A DNA stretch of 64,000 bases from Dicyema japonicum (taxonomy: Eukaryota; Animalia; Dicyemida): contig RDEW01000064.1 of assembly GCA_011109175.1 (NCBI GenBank), forward strand, positions 145,270 through 209,269, in the 5' to 3' direction. Shown in pieces: positions 41,620 through 53,560 of the stretch. The notes beneath the pieces are model-generated. The model was not told where the DNA came from, searched no databases, and saw nothing but the letters and a program-made list of their open reading frames with translations. The translations under genes were made by a program, and so were the position numbers. Every line of letters starts with the position of its first letter. Within the stretch, counting starts at the first letter, position 1.

Positions 41620-42894
41620 CGCCTGACCAAAGAAGAAGACCTCCTTCCGGATTTTGCAGAAGGGGGCGTCGACCTCGTTCAGGAAATTCTCAGTTATTCA
41701 CAGGGTTTATGACGTTTGTAATATTCCAGTGGTTTGGTATCTGAGAAGAGTGACCATGAATTGTTCTTTACAAACAAGAAAAAGAAGAAGGTGGTCGTGA
41801 AAGACAAATTACACCCTCTTAAGCGGCCTCTTAGATGTTTGGCAGCCCTGGAGAACAAATCTCTGGTGAATATAGATGGCAACAATAAGGAGACCAAAAT
41901 GCCTAAATCCAACAAGAAGAAGTCGACGATAGTCTCCAAGACAGATATCACTGAGCTAAACAAAATTCTTCCTGAGAGAAAGCCTAAACCAAACATGGCA
42001 AAGATTTTCGATATTTGGTCTTCCCAAGGCCACAATGACAAAACACGTGTCCACGAAAAACCTGATCTTCTTAAGCAGGTACAAACGTGTTTTCACGTGT
42101 AGAATTTACCACATCCGGGATTTTCCTACAACCCTGAGCCAGAACTCCACCAGGATTTACTCTGGGCTGCCCACGTGGCTATAAAGAATGATGAGGATGA
42201 GAAGGATTTGGCTCAAAAGATTTATAATGAGGGGTTTAACATACCAAAGGAATTACTAGAGGTTATTACCCACGTGGGTTATCCATTTAGAAGCGGGAGG
42301 AAGAGATGATGTTGAGTGGGCTGGGAGAGGACGAGACAGTTCCCAAGGAGACTGAGATGGTAGTAGAAGACGTCATACGGAAGTCCTTTCGACGGGAGAA
42401 GAAGACACGGTCTCAAATTATCGCAAAGAAGCGAAATTTGATGAAGGTCTCGGTCCCTGGTTAATTTTCGGAAAGAATGAGACTCCGTGAGTGTCTCAAC
42501 TCGAAAAGGGACAAACAGTTCCGGAATTTGAATGATATCTGTAAGATGTTGGACAACGAGGATAAAAGGATTGGGGAAAATAAGGAGCTGACATCAAAGA
42601 AGCGAGCTGCTCTTAAATCGAGGACTAAGAGGTTGGCGAGGCTTAAATTCCGTGAACCCCTTCCGTTGGATGTTAAACCGAGTGATGAACTGCCATCATA
42701 ATTGACTAAACTGTCGGTAACTGATGATTATTATTACAGCCTGAGGAGAGTCTGTTGAAAGACCATTGCGTGGACTTTCAGAAGAGGAATCTGATATGTC
42801 CGTCGAGGAAGTTAAGGAAGATTGGGTTATTGTTTGTAGTCGTAAGAAGACTAAGTATAGAGAAGTTGTTAGAAGGAGTTTGAGATATTTGTGA
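41620..42894 (+). pseudogene. NOP53: NOP53 (GLTSCR2/PICT1) ribosome biogenesis gene, disabled
   Basis: GLVSEKSDHELFF..KRPLRCLAALENKSLV; GFSYNPEPELHQDLL; KRLARLKF..DVKPSDELPS*LTKL|PEESLLKDHCVDFQKRNLI; in-frame TAA at 42699; intron 42447-42470 ends CG; start not resolved. Confidence 0.75.
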
Positions 42895-43919
42895 GTTTTT
42901 AATACTTTGTGTTGAGTTGGCTGTTTTTGTAAATGCTAAGTTGTTAAATAGGCATTTCTTCTTGAAAATGTTTTGAGAATGGGAAAGTTATGCTTTATAA
43001 TTAATCTTGCCCCCCATATACAATAAGTCCTCTCTAATCAGTCATCCAGTGCCAAAATACTTTTTCTAACTAGCTTATTTTTGACATTATCGGAAAGTTC
43101 CTGAATTCGTCGATAAACCGTATTATTGACAATGAAACAAAATCCAGTTTTTTAGCGATTTCTCCCTTAAAGACACTCCACGAGCTACTGGCTTATTTTT
43201 GATATTATCGGAAAGTTCCTTAATTCGTCGATAAACCGTATTATTGACAATGAAACAAAATCCAGTTTTTTAGCGATTTCTCCCTTAAAGACACTCCACG
43301 AGCTTTCTAAAATTTATACGCTTAACCATTGTTCGCTATCAGATAACTCACATAATAAAATAACTTTAAAATTAAAAAGATGGTCTGGTCCATTTTAGAT
43401 GATTGTCTAGCAAAATTTAGTAGAGATGATTTACATTTTGGACTTGTTGAATTTATTTTGAAAAATAACCATTGTTCGCTATCAGATAACTCACATAATA
43501 AAATAACTTTAAAATTAAAAAGATGGTCTGGTCCATTTTAGATTATTGTCTAGCAAAATTTAGTAGAGATGATTTACATTTTGGACTTGTTGAATTTATT
43601 TTGAAAAAAAATCCTTATTTTTGAGACGTGGATGCTTCATTGACAAATGTTTCGAAAGCTTTGATGGTGTTTGTCATTATTTGATTGCATATTCATTTTG
43701 CCGTTTCCGGTATATCTTCCTTTTTCAAATTCATATTATAGATAACATTATTTTATTTGCTTTTTATTAATAATAATAAATAAGGCGATTTTTGTCAATA
43801 AAGTCAAAAATTCATATGTCCTTTAAAATTATTTAAAACTTATAAAAATGTGATTTTAAATAAAAAAATATTCTATAAATCAAAAGTTATAAAGTCAAAA
43901 AAAAGTCAAAATATAACTT

Positions 43920-44330
43920 TTTTTGCCGAACGATCCATCGAGGCATGTGACTGAAATGATATCTTCGACATGCTGAGGTCTGAGGCCAAACAGCATCGTC
44001 TTGCATGCCATGTGTTCGCCGCCAACCATGGGTGCGGAGCGTGGCAGGATGCACTCCCGTGTTCCTCCCTGGGGACCCTTTTGGACGATGACTGTATTCG
44101 GATTGGGATCACCCCTGGGAGTTGATGTTTGCGTCGAACACCAATGTTGATGTGGAGGGATCGTCGATGCCAAAAGGCTGCACCCGCTCTCGTGCAAAAG
44201 GAGTGCGAGCAGAGCACCCCGCCAAGAAAGATGTGCGGGAAGCGGTCTGGCTGAGGCAACGAATAAATATCGCAGTTGTCCGCGGAAACGCTTACTCATG
44301 ATGTCAGCAGCCGCTCTCCCCCATAGTTAA
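43920..44330 (+). mobile_element. CRE-like 3' fragment, internally deleted relative to 59640-60400
   Basis: Direct homology; deletion junction at gagcaccccgcc|aagaaag. Confidence 0.7.
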
Positions 44331-44426
44331 TAAATAATATTTTATTGTTAATAGATTTTTCGTTTAGTAAAGTAAAAAATTTTATCGATTTTATTTATTA
44401 ATTTTTCGAGTTTTTAAATAAATTGC

Positions 44427-44610
44427 ATAGTGCTGGTAAAAAAAACCGGTTTCGTAGTTACAAACTTTTTTGGCGTATAGATATTAATTTTTAACTGAAT
44501 TAAAGTGTTTGGAGTTGACTAGATGTATAATTTTTTTATTTAAAAAAATTTCCTTAATCGTCTAAAATTTTTAAAATTTCAATTTAGCGTGTGAATAAAA
44601 AAACCGGATT
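44427..44610 (+). repeat. Solo left TIR of the Tc1 element at 60498-61459
   Basis: agtgctggtaaaaaaaaccggtttcgtagttaca.. matches 60499-60680. Confidence 0.65.
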
Positions 44611-46849
44611 TGGATTACAGCCAAAGGTAGACTGATTCCAGAACCAAGGCCACAGTGTCGGTTTTCCGAGAGAAAAAATAATACGGTAGTTCCCAAAGGG
44701 TCCGTCAACGCCCGAAGGCACCTTCGTTTCTTGTAGACAACAAATCCGATTTTGTATCTCTTTAGGTCTTTTCCAGCCTTTTAGATTGACAGGATGACAG
44801 GTTTACATGAAAAAATAAAGTTCTTTACTCCTTGGAATATTTTCCTTCAATACTCATAGGCATCTTTATTGCTAGGGAATCAGCCAATCTAATCACATGA
44901 TCATGGCTGATGGCCTTCGAGGGATCACAGTGAGTGAAAGAGTTATTATGCGATCTTTCAAGAGGGCACTAATACATAAAGTCAGATATACAATTAGTCA
45001 ATATCTTCCCCACCCCCCACATTTGGCCTCAATTGGTCTGGATCATCTGGGGATTTCAACGAACCTGTCTTCAGCAATAAGTGATAACGACCCCACAATG
45101 ATTTAAATCACTGGTAGACTCATATTTTCTGTGGTTATCGTCGCAATTTTCGTCTCCCATGGACAGTTAATATAAACATCACATCTCTCTAGGTCCTTAA
45201 AGTATCTCCCTCCACCTGGTCTCTAATACACCTCAAGCATTAAATGTTAGGAGCTTCAGACGAGAAACGAGGGACACTACCTCGTCAAAAAAGGATGACA
45301 AACCACTAAGGTGCCTGAAAATATTCATAGATACTCTTCCTGGCGATGGGAGTTTTTGTCCTCGACCACCTGAGAGAACCCCCTCCCCCTGCAAGAAGCG
45401 GTCCACTATGCTAAGTTAAGCATCAATGGGTTGAGGCAAAATTTTGGACTACGCTTTCTCCTGGTGGAGTTGAAGATCGACATTGCTTCGATTTACAACT
45501 CCCTTTAAACGGACCTACTCCCGCTGTTACCTGTTGCATGTAAATATTGACTAACCGGACAAAAAACAAGGTGGTGGTCACCTCACTTTATACCGGAGAG
45601 ATTTTAGATGCGTGGACATCACTTTGGAGACGTAGAACCTAATTGGGAAAGACGATGTACTGAAATCACTGCGATTTCACTTGGGAAATAAATAGAAATT
45701 TTTTTTTATGAACATCTGGGTTCCCCCACCTGATTTTTATCCAAAGCATTGTGCTACACTCGATTTATCCACCTACCTTGAACGGTGTGATCAGTAGTTT
45801 GAGTTTGATATGTGGATTTTGTAATCCCTAACTGCATGCACGTATAACGCTTCCTGAGATTCTTAATAGCCATCTGAGGCTGACGGGGAAGCACGAGGAA
45901 CGACTAAGACCATGGTGATCTAAAAAATCTTGAACATGGGAGAGAGATAGGTAACCAGGATCATCGACACTACTTTGATTTATATTAGCTACCAAATCAA
46001 CAAGCCTTTCAGTAGAGTTCGACTGACCAGTGTTGTCGCTCGTGTCGCGATTATCTGGGGGTTCGATCCCTACGTGATACTTACCTAGTCGAAGGGTTCC
46101 GTTCTCTGCCTTCTTCTAATTAAAGATACCTCATGTGGTATCTCTACCTATCTCAGATGACGGTGTCTGTCGGCATCCAAAAAGAATATATCTTTTCCCT
46201 AATCAACTGGTGGGAAGTAATGCTTGGAAGGATGTGTCTCACTCTGACCGTGGGAACTGGGGTTATTGAATGAAGTAGAGTTTGACTACTAAAAACTCCT
46301 CGTTGTACTTTCCACTTATATTCGAATATGGAACTCAACGTTGATCAATAAACTGTTTTGCACGGGCACTGCTATCGACACCCTTACAATTTCCACCTAT
46401 AAGGCTGTTTGATAATATGGCCTAGTAATATAGTTGTTTTGTGAGAAAACGACTTTTTTTTAATTTAACTAAGTTAAAAAAAGAAAAAAATCTTTTCAGC
46501 TAACTATGCGATCCTAGACTGATTGGGGGAGGTCAACCGGCGGGACTGGGATCTTTAAATAATTTCCATAACAGGCTTTAAGTCAGCTCGTATTTTGGGT
46601 GGTTTATGAGATATTGGAAAAGGATGTAATAGAGGGGGGTGTTTGCTAGGTTAGGAACTGCTCGGTAAAAGAACTAACCTATTGTAAATTCTAACTATCT
46701 AGTGTTTCCCCCAAAACTGCTTTTCTCAGAAGACGAGCTATAGCCTTGCCACTTCTCCGTTTCCTCTTCGCTCAGATCAATCACCACAGCACTACTAAAC
46801 TGTGACGTTAGCCTACATTATGTATCCCGCAGAGTCTTCTAAAATGCAT

Positions 46850-48050
46850 GTATCCCTGTCTTTGATCTTCGGTTAGCGTCGTCACAATGTCCTTGATAGC
46901 TGAATTCCCTAAACATCCACGTGAATGATGTACCAACTAGATGTCTGCTCAAATTGGATATCTTCATGCAGTGTTTCTCAACCTGTTTTTGTATCGCCTC
47001 TGTCCCATCAAAAATTGTCAATTATTTCGTCTTCTTTTTCAGAATTTATCATTTCATCTTCATCAATGAATTATTCTTTCTCAGAATTCTCCGATAACAC
47101 CATTTAGTAGTATCTTCATTTTCATGGTGTTGAATATCAAGGAATGTTTCCATGTCCGGAGGGTCCAAAATTCCAATTTTCCTAAAAATTTCAGTAATAT
47201 TATTTCCCCAATCATTTGGACTGACCTCGATATTTTGTTTACGCAATTTATTGAAACAATTTTTAGTTGCTTCATCCATGTTCTATTTGAGTGATCATAA
47301 TTTATCGAACATTCATAATTATATTTTTTGTACCTTAAATTTTGAAATCATAACTGGCTTTAATTTATGGGTTCCAGTCATATTTGTACATAACATAATT
47401 GAAACCCGATCTTTGAAATTTTTATATCCACCAAATCGTGATTTGCATATGCTCTTGGACAAAATCCTAGAGCCCTGTCTCGTCCATATTGTAAATTTCG
47501 TCTTCTTTATAATGTTTGGAAATTTTTTTCAAAGTGATCTACAAATCCTTCTAGGTCAGGTTGTTTGTCAGTTATCAATTCCCATCTAATTTATGCATTC
47601 GAAAACTGTATTTTAAGAAAACCTTTTGAATTCTTGAAATCACAAATTGATAACTTTTTAGCAATATTTTGTGCTTTATTTGATATTGGTCCATCATTTA
47701 ACATAGCCCCTAACAAACAAATAAAAAAATACTCTTAGATTCCATCAAATCCATCCATTCAACTAGCTTAGCATCAAGTTCAGGAAATTTTAATGATTTG
47801 CATGGCTTTTTTGAAGGAATATAATTTTTAGATGTTTTCAATTTGGAATCTCAGGAATTAATAAAATTATTCACTGTTTTTCTTTAAATTCGACATTAAA
47901 TAAATCAGAAAATCTGTGACCGATTGTTTGGCACAATGTAGTATTATTCTCATCTTTATCTCTAAAAATTTCAAGTTTTTGGAAACAATTAAGCTTGTAT
48001 AATTACAACGAGAAGCTTTCGAACACATGGTAAAATTTTTAAAAAAATAA
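46850..48050 (-). mobile_element. Tigger/pogo transposase, degenerate
   Basis: GYKNFKDRVSIMLCTNMTGTHKLKPVMI (Tigger DDE_1 motif). Confidence 0.7.
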
Positions 48051-48347
48051 TTGAAAATGATTAGTAAAAATAAATTTTATTTTTTTTAATAATGTTGGCC
48101 AATTTCTTAGAAAAATTTGCTTTTCTATGAAAATTTGCCCTGACGTGAAATTTTGAACCAATTTGAGAATTGGGCAATTAGAGGGAGTTACTGTAGTTAT
48201 GAATCCTTAATAACTACCACCGAAAAGCCAACTTTATAAAACCTCTAGTCGTCCATACTAACTTAATGATTATCTAAGAGGACACCTCTGTGCCATTTAC
48301 TACTCAAAAACCCAAATATTAAAAATGATAAAAAAGAATAAAAAACG

Positions 48348-51300
48348 TTATATAAGATCAGTAAGCGCAATCCTAGGGACGATATTCATAGCAGTCAATT
48401 CCTGTATGAGTAATTTAAAAGCATAAGGGATCTTAATAGCAGCCATGGACTGTCCATCTCTACAGTTTTGACACCAATTCTCATATCCCATTACTCCACA
48501 CATTTGACAAATATGAGCAACAAACTCATCACTAGAGTGCACCAATCTCTCATAAATAAGACTGCTGGCCCCGTAAGCTATCAAACAATCTCTCTCCATT
48601 TCCCCAATTCTGAGTCCCCCTTCACGGGTTCTAACCTCCGTGGGTTGTCTAGTCAGATTAACAATAGGTCCAGTCGCCCTAGCATGTATTTTGTCCCCCA
48701 CCATGTGTTTCAATCTCTGATAGTAAACAATCCCATTATAAATATAACACTTTAACGGTAGACTATAATAACACCACAAATAACCCCCCAATACCAGTGT
48801 ACATGATATCCTCCCCAATGTAATTAAATCCATGAGTTTCTAATACCTTCTGAGTAAATTCCCTCTTATGCCCCGTGAAGACTACGATAAGTTAGAGAAA
48901 TACTAGTGGCATCGATGAAATCTCCGTTAATCGATGCCGCCTTCCCCGCCAATATTTCCAAAAGTTTACCCACAGTCATCCTTGAGGGGAAACCATGGGG
49001 ATTCATGATCTAATATCCACCAAAAATTACAATATCAGGGATGTAGCCCTACAGTTACGTATTTCATCCAATCCATGACCTACCATCAGTCCCAATACCA
49101 CCTTAGTCTTGACCAGTGGTTTTTGGGGATATAATAAATTATAAATAACAGAGTCGTAACGGTCCCGATGATTCTCAGCCATTAGGCCCTGAGTCTGTTT
49201 GCACATTGCACACTGATAGGTTAGTCTGGGGGCAGGGTTGTGATTAGGGAATGGAATGGTAGAGGCAGCTATACCGATTAACGCACAACCAGCGATCTCC
49301 ATGTGAGTATGATGTCTGACTAATTAATACAGCCATACTCAGTAAGCTCATCCCTATTACGGGCCAACACCACATCCTCCATTTCGTTGCCGTCAATAAA
49401 CTCCAAAATCCCTTTCTTTGTCATGGTTTGCACTTGTCTACAATATATACCCAACAAACATGTATTTCCTCTGTAAAGCAATCTCCATTTCGGGGGTAAC
49501 CAAACATCTCCCATTCTTTACTCTAAAGAAAGGTCTTATTAGGCGACCAGAATCATATGACACTATCACAAAACGACGTATTTCGTCCATATTAATGTTA
49601 ACATAAAAGGGGAGGAGTGACAATCGACGTAGTCTTCTTATTCTCTCCACCAAATTAGCAGGTTCAGGAGTTATTCCAATAAATTCCCCCAAATTAATAA
49701 CAAAAGTACCATTAAGGAAAACCATATAGCTTGTAATACTAATAGCCTGAGGTCCCGATAACGATTCATCTACAAGCACTCCAAAGTTTCTCAATACGGT
49801 GGCTATAGCATCATGCTCAATATCACACGACACTTCAGTCAGGAGAGCAAAGTTCTTAACAAGTCCACAACTCTGTAATATACAAATGAGGTAACCTCTC
49901 CCTCAGGGGTATCACATGGACATATGAAATAAAATTGAGTCCCGTGAATAGATCGGGGACCAACTGCCTTCCTAGACTTCTCATATTGGGAGGCTATTCT
50001 CGTCAGATGCGTGAGTGTTGCGATATAACAACATCGATTCAACACTTGAGTAACCCCCGGTCTGTCCATTTTGAACATTTTTATAACCCAATTCCCCTAT
50101 AAATCACAACCCCCACTACAGTCAAAATAGCGCCCTCCATTCTGTCACAAATAAATCTGGGGGACATATAGTTAACCAAGTCAAATCCATTATTCTTGTA
50201 TAACCTCTCATACCTCTTCCTCAACTAGGAATAACCCCCACTAACAAAATCAGTATTGAAAGTCTGAAACAAATCCTGAAATAACAAGGAAAGCAATGAA
50301 GAAGCCAACTCCACCCGTTTGTTTCCACAATGTTCCTTACAGTCAACGGTCTCGGGCATTAGCTTACCCTTTATGAACCGGTAGAACATAATACACAAGT
50401 ACACCGCCTTTCTCCTCAAATTGAGCCCATCACCCTGATAATAACACAGCAAATGACCTTAATGTGAGGCAGTACTGTGTCGGAAAGTACTCTATCAACC
50501 ATATCACTTCTACTTAAGTCCTGAACCCCCTGTTCATAACCGCTTATACTCAATTTATCCTCCAAATACTTACGCGCCTACAATTACCCCCAACAGCCAC
50601 CGCCACAGCCGTGTGTACTTTAGCCACTTCATGACACTGATAGAGACTTGAAGTCAACATTGAGAAAGCCTCAGTTGTGAGTCCCATGTAGCCAATCGCT
50701 TCCTGATCTGTTTCAATGCCGAGGGCCTTCACGACAATGTACGCTGGGACAATCTCACAGAACGAGTTGTGTTTTATGTAAAATATGTCGTTCTTGAGGA
50801 ATAAAGTCAATTTACTCTTCCTTAGGGGGGTAGAACTACAGTTAACAGTGTAACTACCACATAACTGAACATTTCAGCTCTTCTCCGTCGTCCTCCACTA
50901 TTATACGGTTTTTTATTGTCTGTTCCTGTATCATGAGTACTCGTTCGGTTCCCTTCACGACAAAGTATCCCCCAGGATCAAGTGGACATTCCTGGATGGC
51001 GATCATCTGATAATCCCTGTGAAGATCGTTCCTGATTATGTTGCAGCATTTGGACTGCAGCATTATTGGCATTCTACATGACACCATAGGGTACCGGCCA
51101 ATCAGGACCTTCTCTTTCTGTACATATGACCCGAGTGCTCCCTTCTGGTAGACAATATCAACGTAAATATCAGCAGAATATGACATATTCCTTTGACGGC
51201 ACTAAAGTGACCCACGTCAACAACTTCATTCGGATAAATATCCCGCATAGCTCCTAATCCGTCTGATACTTCAGGGTGACCAACATAGATATCCTTATAT

Positions 51301-51613
51301 CTGAGAATGATATCACAAATTACTCTATAAACAAGCTTCCTGTGGCAAATGAGTAAAATTGATTCTGTGCCCTCACAATCTCTTTAATCTAATAATAATG
51401 GAAGTAACAACGTGTTTTTGAACGAAACTGTTGAACGAATTAATTTGCATCTTCACTAGTCCACCAAAGTGAAGATATTGAGGAAGAAAGGACTCCGTAC
51501 CCTACAATTTATATCAAACTAAGACTTTAAACTCTCTTAAGTGTGATCGATCATTTAAATACAACTCTGAAAATCTTTGGTTACTATTGCGTAAATAATA
51601 ACAATTACTGCAT
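48348..51613 (-). pseudogene. POLR3B: RNA polymerase III second-largest subunit (RPC2) with about 20 introns of 21-25 nt and about 190 codons missing; start codon tentative
   Basis: After splicing, colinear with POLR3B: [108 protein letters not shown] (RPC2-type C-terminus). GYDIEDA and GDKFSSRHGQKG are absent. Confidence 0.9.
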
Positions 51614-51849
51614 CCACTAATAAATTCTAAAGCATTCACTGATTTTAAACGTTTATTATTTGTTATTTAGGTTAACCACTTAATAATTATTTTTAAAATA
51701 TTATTAATTTTATAATATTCAATCTTAAAATACGAAAATGATAAAACCAAAAGTTCTATCGGCTCGCTAAGAAATTTCCGTCTCCAATCGGCTTCACTGT
51801 AAAGATCAAAGTAGCCATTTCCGTTCGACAGTGGAAACAATGGAGACGC

Positions 51850-51960
51850 ACAGGCTTCGAATGTCACGTTTGGTTGCGGGAACTAGGATCACCTAACTAT
51901 TTGACATTTCTTTTGTATTTTTTTCTCGGTGATCCCGGGGTTAATAAATAAAATAATAAA
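51850..51960 (+). repeat. Dispersed repeat family B 3' end
   Basis: ggaactaggatcacctaactattt..ttctcggtgatcccggggttaataataaa matches the reverse complement of 28690-28900. Confidence 0.5.
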
Positions 51961-52059
51961 AGTTCTGTATTTTCGATATCCTAATAATACTCCCATGTCT
52001 CAATTGAATTTGACAAAAACGTGACTATTAAAAACACGTGTTTGTTAATGGCAATATCA

Positions 52060-53560
52060 CCCTAATAATGGAAAATATTAAATTTTGAACGGAAGGATGC
52101 CTAATGAATTGTGGAATGATGTGCAGTTGGTTATCAGGAACGCTGCAATAAAACATGTCAAATACAAAATGCTCTGAGTGGCTCTCTGCCAACACCCTAA
52201 ACATTGCTAAGGCTCGTAAAGCTGCTAAAATCTCTGGGAATATAGACTAGACAAGAAAACTTAACTCTGAGTTCAAAAAGGCAGCCAGGAAGGATAAGGA
52301 CTACTCGAGGTTACGCTGCAAAAAATGGAAGATGACTATAAGAGAGGTCACACTAGAAATGCGTATTTACAACTAAAAAGATTATAAACCCCCTATACGA
52401 AAATGATGGGCAAAATCAAGGACAATGACGGTGTTGAATTACTAAGCCAACAAACATCCGAAATTGATGGAGAGAATATACGGAAAGGCTATATTCAAAA
52501 ATCGTGTGCCAACCCATATATGTTAATGAAGCAACGTTGGGTGAAAGGCATAAAATCCTCGAGGAGGGATGCGTGTGGGCTACACAGCAATTAACGGGGA
52601 ACAAGACACCGGGGATTGACAACATCTCAAGCGAATTATTGAAGGCTATACCGGTGACAGCTATCACCAGTCTATTTCAAAAAAATTGTGAAACTGGTAT
52701 TTGGCCACGTGAGTGGAAAAGATCTATATTTATTCCAATACCGAAAAAAGGGGATACCTAGAACTGTTCAAACTATCGTACAATAGCCTTAATTCCCCAC
52801 GTCCGCAAAAGACTTCTAAAGATAATACAACATTGTCTAATGCCAAATGCCGAAATGATTCTACCGGATGTCCAAGCAGGATTCAGGAAGGGACGAGGCA
52901 CACGTGACCAAAAGTCCGGTGGATTAGGGGGAAAGCCCATGAATCCCAAAAGAGTGTATAAAAGCTTTTGATTCCGTTATACATGACAAGCTGTGGTCCG
53001 CTTTAAAAGAATTTGGATTCGATGCCTATCTGACATTGCTTATCAAATCTCTTTAAAGGATCAAGAAACTACTGTTAGAACAGTGTATGGAAATACCGAT
53101 TAGTTCAAAATTGGTAAAGGAGTAAGACAAGGATGCTCATTATCTCTCATCCTATTCAATATGTATGCCGAAATGATCATGACTAATTTGGATACTGTAT
53201 CAAATAACGGGATTAAAATTGGAGGCAGAAACATCAATAAATTGCGCTATGCTGACGATACAACCTTACTGGCTGAAACAGAGGATGGCCTCAGAAAGTT
53301 GATTCTAAGATTCAGAGAAGAGAGCGCCGTCTTCGGTTTATTGCTAAATAATGACGACTGGTAATAATGGAATAATAGGAACAAAAATTGGGAATGAGAA
53401 AATAGAGAGTTGCGTTAATGTTGTCTTTCTGAGATGTCTAATTAATCGGAATGGTGACGGAGGCCTGGAAATCAAGAGGCGAATTGCCATGGGACGAGAC
53501 ACCTTCCAGAGAATGAATAGAATTTGGAAAAGCAAAGATATTTGCTTAAGGCCAAATAAT
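52060..53560 (+). mobile_element. RTE (BovB-like) LINE RT, degenerate
   Basis: NKTPGIDNISSELLK; WKRSIFIPIPKKGD; QAGFRKGRGTRD; GVRQGC; LRYADDTTLLAE. Confidence 0.85.

Follow-up and report, generated by a model that had tools for sequence, protein, structure and literature searches.

The DNA analyzed here, a stretch of 64,000 nucleotides from the dicyemid Dicyema japonicum (C339:145270-209269; the window in the following), carries on its minus strand a copy of the gene for RPC2 (POLR3B), a subunit of RNA polymerase III (Pol III), from which 584 bp encoding the catalytic core are missing. A second copy of the gene, here called the sister copy, is located on the same scaffold (C339) and contains the segment. 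Judging from the comparison of the two sequences, the window copy is probably the daughter of a recent segmental duplication of ~11.7 kb at the DNA level, which the deletion would have turned into a young pseudogene or null allele; the 10 nt left at the junction, which begin with GT and end with AG, would be a scar that resembles an intron by chance.

The RPC2 copy in the window and its missing core

The published assembly of D. japonicum has 377 scaffolds and a size of 67.5 Mb; its introns are extremely short, and 49% of it is repeats (PMC6736024). All genome-wide searches reported here were run on 377 contigs totaling 67,542,437 bases. Exon/intron models were obtained by minimum-intron dynamic programming, allowing introns of 20-26 nt with YAG ends (18-45 nt within the segment deleted from the window copy); looser limits produced spurious introns. 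The resulting model of the window copy contained ~17 introns of 21-25 nt each. Its exons were searched one at a time, and not as a spliced full-length protein, against Pfam and PDB. They matched RNA_pol_Rpb2_1, _3, _4, _6, and _7, all above the curated cut-offs, and the best PDB match was human RPC2 (7a6h_B). Human and yeast RPC2 (5fj8_B) outranked the RPB2 and RPA2 chains; for the C-terminal exon, the E-values were 1e-51 (RPC2), 1e-40 (RPB2), and 1e-27 (RPA2), and the ranking was the same for the other exons. Two poorly conserved exons had no matches in the PDB search. With separate RPB2 (C24 and C35) and RPA2 (C112) loci present in the genome, and with domains 1, 3, 4, 6 (both ends), and 7 in exons nearer to RPC2 than to RPB2 or RPA2, the assignment to POLR3B made in an earlier note, which had been written from the sequence of the window alone, was borne out. 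A protein word-index search with the C-terminal exon returned matches of at most 71% identity, the top one from Octopus sinensis; the exon's own 163-aa open frame was not returned either, so the collection probably does not include D. japonicum.

Across ~850 RPC2 codons, TAA, TAG, and TGA were absent in frame, which indicates that the genetic code is standard here and speaks against a ciliate origin, to which the micro-introns could have pointed. Apart from the deletion, neither a stop nor a frameshift was present in the window copy between ATG 51613 and TAA 48350. At 49338-49316, what looked like a frameshift proved to be an ordinary 23-nt intron, which the sister copy shares unchanged.

Direct reading of the sequence around 49058-49049 confirmed the arrangement described in the earlier note. 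On the minus strand, AAG ACT AAG (KTK) is followed by a 22-nt intron (gtggtattgggactgatggtag) and by GTC ATG GAT TGG ATG AAA TAC (VMDWMKY), after which come the 10 nt GTAACTGTAG (49058-49049), GGC TAC ATC CCT GAT ATT (GYIPDI), a 21-nt intron (gtaatttttggtggatattag), and ATC ATG AAT CCC CAT GGT (IMNPHG). In the PDB alignment, KTK corresponds to human RPC2 up to residue 723 and IMNPHG to the sequence from residue 928 onward, and ~191 residues (human 731-921), the core of domain 6, are missing by comparison with human RPC2 (7a6h_B); the loss had previously been put at ~190. The exons flanking the gap match RNA_pol_Rpb2_6 at positions 2-56, 258-292, and 329-372 in Pfam, with ~57-257 missing. Among the missing residues are SYSGYD and GDKFSSRHGQKG; domain 6 is incomplete in the window copy, SYSGYD..ED and GDKFSSRHGQKG being found only in the sister copy. 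When the 10 nt are retained, the reading continues as V T V G L H P and ends at a TGA (49037-49035); when they are removed, KY is joined to GY in frame. The early stop after a frameshift and the loss of the catalytic core had both been anticipated correctly.

The sister copy and the origin of the 10-nt remnant

Rpb2_6 was detected at five loci of the genome only: RPB2 on C24, a decayed RPB2 duplicate on C35, RPA2 on C112, and two RPC2 loci on C339, namely, the window copy and the second one. Scans with Rpb2_3 and Rpb2_7 returned the identical five loci, and the Rpb2_1 scan returned four, without that on C112; a third RPC2 gene did not emerge when the entire assembly was scanned with Rpb2_1, _3, _6, and _7. 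The sister copy (C339:233.4-237.2 kb) lies 40 kb downstream and has the same introns. According to BLASTN and to a global alignment (MAFFT) with the sister sequence as reference (L013), the two copies are collinear and ~99% identical in the gene, with a single gap of exactly 584 bp (L013:2594-3177), which are missing from the window copy.

The exon of the sister beginning with VMDWMKY continues with GAT AGA CTA CCC TCA GGG CAG and runs on for another 135 nt. The segment, which includes GDKFSSRHGQKG, also encodes ...EVGDKFSSRHGQKG and ...PPEDMPFTES, followed by a 23-nt intron (GTAAGTGATTGTAATAACTGTAG) and GYIPDI. The additional exons correspond to positions 58-106 and 184-234 of Rpb2_6 (Pfam) and to human residues 726-773 (PDB). 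The segment is open only with one intron of 41 nt, which is unusual for this gene, though not far from the average of 38 bp published for introns of D. japonicum (PMC6736024). All other RPC2 introns measure 20-25 nt, and none is near 10 nt.

By this alignment, the 5′ breakpoint interrupts an exon directly behind the G (49058) of codon GAT, and the 3′ breakpoint falls 9 nt short of the end of the 23-nt intron, whose last 9 nt are TAACTGTAG (49057-49049). The junction thus reads ...AAATACG/TAACTGTAGGGC... (also written ...AAATACG/TAACTGTAGGG...). It had been proposed that the break is exon-precise and joins the ends of two introns, which does not agree with the continuation of the sister exon over 135 nt: the leading G of the 10 nt belongs to codon GAT and the other 9 nt are an intron tail. 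As read from the alignment, the GT of the scar is made up of one exon base and one intron base, and its AG is nothing but the unchanged 3′ splice site. Only one placement of the junction is possible, without microhomology (0 nt) or a flanking repeat; the longest word common to both breakpoints within 60 nt is 7 nt long and lies off the junction. The suggested microhomology deletion between two micro-introns is therefore not supported. Nor does the sequence favor a split or trans-spliced gene whose middle lies elsewhere: the 584 bp occur once genome-wide, inside the other full-length copy, so there is no separate middle piece of the gene. Neither a circular nor a permuted form of the segment was found in the assembly.

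A spliced intron of 10 nt is also unnecessary to explain the sequence. The 10-mer shares the initial GT and the terminal TAG of the local introns, but it has half the length of any intron in the gene, falls outside the local range of 20-25 nt (plus the one of 41 nt), and, consisting of an exon G and an intron tail, has no history as an intron, its 5′ side being exon in the sister. The ultra-short spliceosomal introns of Stentor measure 15-16 nt, and those of Dicyema and myxobolids ~20-27 nt.

The structure of the two copies suggests that a recent segmental duplication (~11.7 kb) copied the RPC2 locus at the DNA level, and that a blunt deletion of the end-joining type subsequently removed 584 bp from the window copy, beginning in the middle of one exon and stopping in a downstream intron, 9 nt ahead of its end. 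The missing segment comprises three complete exons and portions of two others, coding for the hybrid-binding and active-site core of the subunit, and the leftover G plus TAACTGTAG reads GT..AG by chance. Normal splicing would keep the 10 nt, shift the frame, and lead to a stop 7 codons on; because of this, the window copy is regarded as a putative young pseudogene or null allele. The loss may have been tolerated thanks to the other RPC2 copy. We infer this order of events, and likewise that the deletion is real in the animals and not just in the assembly.

In functional terms, the window copy most likely does nothing. The mRNA from default splicing is predicted to be frameshifted and to encode ~700 residues, with the catalytic half missing; two in-frame products, by removal of the 10 nt or by skipping of the 21-nt exon, are conceivable, each without the hybrid-binding core. 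In keeping with a duplicated (non-processed) pseudogene, the window copy has a paralogous source with which it shares introns and flanks, lies near this parent on the same scaffold, and bears a disabling internal lesion (the 584-bp deletion with frameshift and TGA); the neighboring gene in the same block, Nop53, is disabled too. It departs from this class in being very young (~1% divergence; ratio of nonsynonymous to synonymous differences per site, pN/pS, of 0.23) with a single frame-breaking lesion, and in that the parental copy itself has a nonsense codon in the assembly. Taken alone, a further young duplicate pseudogene from the repeat-rich genome of a parasite is of little weight. For annotation, it is a caution that GT..AG remnants in micro-intron genomes can pass for record-short introns.

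The duplicated block and its neighborhood

The block within the window, ~11.7 kb long, has its counterpart further downstream on C339 (Table 1), where the second block begins straight after a 3.7-kb run of N. At the other end, homology stops abruptly within a long interspersed nuclear element (LINE), with gap-free sequence on both sides and no resumption: the LINE of the window ends at 53557, whereas the frame in the second block runs on (...IWKSKDICLRTKCRLVNAIVFPVFLYGVESW...). Because the LINE frame continues only there, the window block is taken to be the derived copy. The block also includes a copy of Nop53, a gene for 60S biogenesis, in which an in-frame TAA sits just before the conserved C-terminal motif. 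Nop53 was found in the genome only within the two duplicated blocks, and the 5′ end of the second copy (C339:212959-214200) is cut by the assembly gap. The published assembly has only two copies each of RPC2 and Nop53, all of them within this duplication; lesions affect the two RPC2 genes and at least one Nop53 gene. In the RPC2 gene of the window, three replacements at conserved sites (Arg, Asp, and Gly; Table 1) hint at relaxed constraint, as far as can be judged from the sequences. These replacements, at sites where the sister copy retains the conserved residue, are consistent with the derived status of the window block, as are the TAA in its Nop53 and the restriction of Nop53 to the two blocks.

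Table 1. Coordinates of the RPC2 copy, its deletion junction, and associated features (positions in the window).
Feature	Position	Strand	Basis or remark
RPC2 (POLR3B) copy with internal 584-bp deletion	51613-48348	-	ATG 51613-51611, TAA 48350-48348; exon-by-exon Pfam and PDB searches
10-nt scar GTAACTGTAG	49049-49058	-	Deletion junction between 49058 and 49057; alignment to sister L013
VMDWMKY exon remnant	49059-49079	-	First 21 nt of the 156-nt sister exon; human RPC2 724-730
Micro-exon GYIPDI, intact	49031-49048	-	Human 922-927
TGA 7 codons past the junction if the 10 nt are kept	49035-49037	-	Direct sequence reading
Met ATG for Arg of sister and human RPC2 (GNWxxKRFKMDR)	50076-50078	-	Copy comparison and PDB
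Asn AAC for Asp of sister and human RPC2	48926-48928	-	Copy comparison and PDB
Val GTT for Gly (TEGRxR), GGT in the sister	48633-48635	-	Gly invariant in 120/120 RPC2 fragments
Duplicated block	41864-53557	.	Collinear with C339:212959-239204; 92-97% identity outside the gene; second copy with extra insertions
5′-truncated LINE reverse-transcriptase fragment, upstream of RPC2	52084-53557	+	Cut at the duplication boundary 53557
Nop53 gene copy	41734-42900	+	In-frame TAA 42699-42701 vs TCA in the second copy

The LINE family to which the fragment upstream of RPC2 belongs has dozens of copies in the genome, with 86-91% identity. Between RPC2 and Nop53 (~46800-47900, minus strand), a remnant of a pogo/Tigger-like transposase was recognized (Pfam DDE_1, E = 3e-5), which is present in the second block too. 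Two inverted partial copies with 93% identity, comprising the LINE fragment, the region upstream of RPC2, and the first 350-480 nt of the gene, are located at C79:895397-897442 (+) and C79:906671-908620 (-); going by these partial copies, the RPC2 locus is one that has been copied repeatedly. The RPB2 gene of Pol II also has a decayed second copy (C35:803000-806730, vs C24:579760-583510), domain 3 of which matches only partly.

Lesions in both copies and competing explanations

Several observations weigh against the view of a dead daughter beside an intact parent. The sister copy carries a TAA at L013:2258-2260 (C339:233757-233759, minus strand), in the motif VYYQRLKHM, where the window copy has TAC; in 120 of 120 homologue fragments, this site is Y or F. 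In addition, it has Arg where Pro is mostly conserved, and because of a 1-nt gap at L013 4636 (window 50517, minus strand), a 20-nt GT..CAG stretch must be removed by splicing for the frame to stay intact. As assembled, neither RPC2 copy is free of disabling lesions, and the view that an intact parent covers for the daughter is only partly supported. A comparison of the copies over 850 codons gave 13 synonymous and 11 nonsynonymous changes (pS 0.024, pN 0.0055); the ratio of 0.23 (p = 4e-4 against neutrality) is not assignable to one lineage. By this ratio, both copies appear to have been under constraint during the greater part of their divergence; the pseudogene state would be very recent or still polymorphic. 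As the pair was under purifying selection during most of its divergence, the disabling events are considered recent. Moreover, the 5′ 1.35 kb differ by 5 substitutions in 1353 aligned sites, compared with 31 in 2247 in the remaining gene (p = 0.003), which suggests gene conversion or mixing of the copies in the assembly. The earlier note had named an intact paralogue, beside an untranscribed window copy, among the findings that would overturn its reading. As regards the paralogue, this is largely the case: a copy with the catalytic core does exist 40 kb away, but it is not flawless. Overall, what had been observed at the junction was confirmed, and its interpretation is partly supported.

The 20-nt GT..CAG stretch (GTTATGAACAGGGGGTTCAG) is read through as exon in the window copy, as 7 in-frame codons, and the 1-nt indel at 50517/L013 4636 may represent a switch from exon to intron in a micro-intron genome.

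Pol III is indispensable. The simplest readings of two flawed copies may be that each young, redundant copy has a segregating null allele, with the consensus of pooled animals displaying both, that the assembler swapped variants between the 99%-identical copies, or that the TAA of the sister is a minor allele or an error. The assembly has a heterozygosity of 1.24% and a BUSCO completeness of ~76%, and its DNA was obtained from pooled animals (PMC6736024; Lu et al. 2019).

A related but unlikely explanation is that the "copies" represent haplotype or population variation at one or two loci, placed in tandem by the assembler, so that deletion and TAA are segregating nulls or a mosaic consensus from a pooled, highly heterozygous sample, and individuals carry at least one intact RPC2. 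The synonymous (2.4%) and intron (2.1%) divergences are close to the published heterozygosity of 1.24%, and the assembly from pooled animals was cleaned up with HaploMerger (PMC6736024). The second block starts exactly where the 3.7-kb N gap ends, the 5′ 1.35 kb are nearly identical between the copies, and the undamaged states alternate between them (window at exon d, L013 at 50149-48928, window at 48758-48725, and L013 at 48635). Mere haplotypes, however, do not readily account for flanks with 3-8% divergence and with several-kb insertions, or for homology that stops sharply in the LINE, gap-free on both sides, and never resumes; two older partial copies of the LINE-RPC2 junction on another scaffold also indicate that the locus does duplicate.

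There is little probability that the animal has the 584 bp at this locus and that they were lost in contig building, gap closing, or gap filling with long reads. Assembly is difficult with two 99%-identical copies, and the procedure included scaffolding, PacBio gap filling, and GapCloser (PMC6736024). Yet there are no Ns at the site, no repeat or common word longer than 7 nt near the breakpoints on which k-mers could have collapsed, and copy-specific variants occur in the flanks on each side of the junction. Only a very small chance is given to the idea that neither copy encodes an active RPC2, the working one lying in unassembled DNA (e.g., germline-restricted or amplified DNA, in an animal whose somatic genome reportedly undergoes rearrangement) or arising from an mRNA joined from both copies; if there were no intact RPC2 in the assembled DNA, this would call into question the completeness of the assembly or the somatic versus germline genome content in dicyemids.

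That the window copy is expressed as a catalytically dead variant with a regulatory or dominant-negative role is highly improbable. Deletion aside, its frame is open from ATG 51613 to TAA 48350, pN/pS is below 1, and both alternative junctions, either by removal of the 10 nt or by skipping of the 21-nt exon as part of a 53-nt intron (49101-49049; KTK to GYIPDI), are in frame. However, a 10-nt intron would be half as long as the shortest intron of the gene, folding and assembly are doubtful with the core of the hybrid-binding domain gone, and the replacement of an invariant Gly and of conserved Arg and Asp indicates relaxed constraint; the low pN/pS is accounted for by the youth of the copy together with constraint on the sister.

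In somatic cells of dicyemids, chromatin elimination and circular DNAs have been described, with "long" circles of a median of ~700 bp (PMC6543705). Programmed or somatic excision of the 584 bp as an extrachromosomal circle has next to no probability: the size falls within the reported range of dicyemid circles, but the two versions differ by ~1-2% with different flanks and so do not represent the unexcised and excised states of a single locus, the circular contigs of Dicyema sp. held only domains of mitochondrially encoded proteins (PMC6543705), and the assembly contains the 584 bp in neither circular nor permuted form.

Among the damaging changes of inferable direction, several are G:C>T:A transversions (TAC>TAA, GGT>GTT, AGG>ATG, and TCA>TAA, at window positions 48725, 48635, 50078, and 42700, respectively), a sample too small to test. 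Both RPC2 copies of Dicyema also have six replacements in common in the near-invariant HNQSPRNTYQCAMGKQAMG motif: they read NHNPAPRLTYQCAMCKQTQG (window 49255-49199, minus strand), compared with HNQSPRNTYQ.AM.KQA.G of the human and archaeal subunits. Unlike them, RPB2 on C24 retains this motif perfectly.

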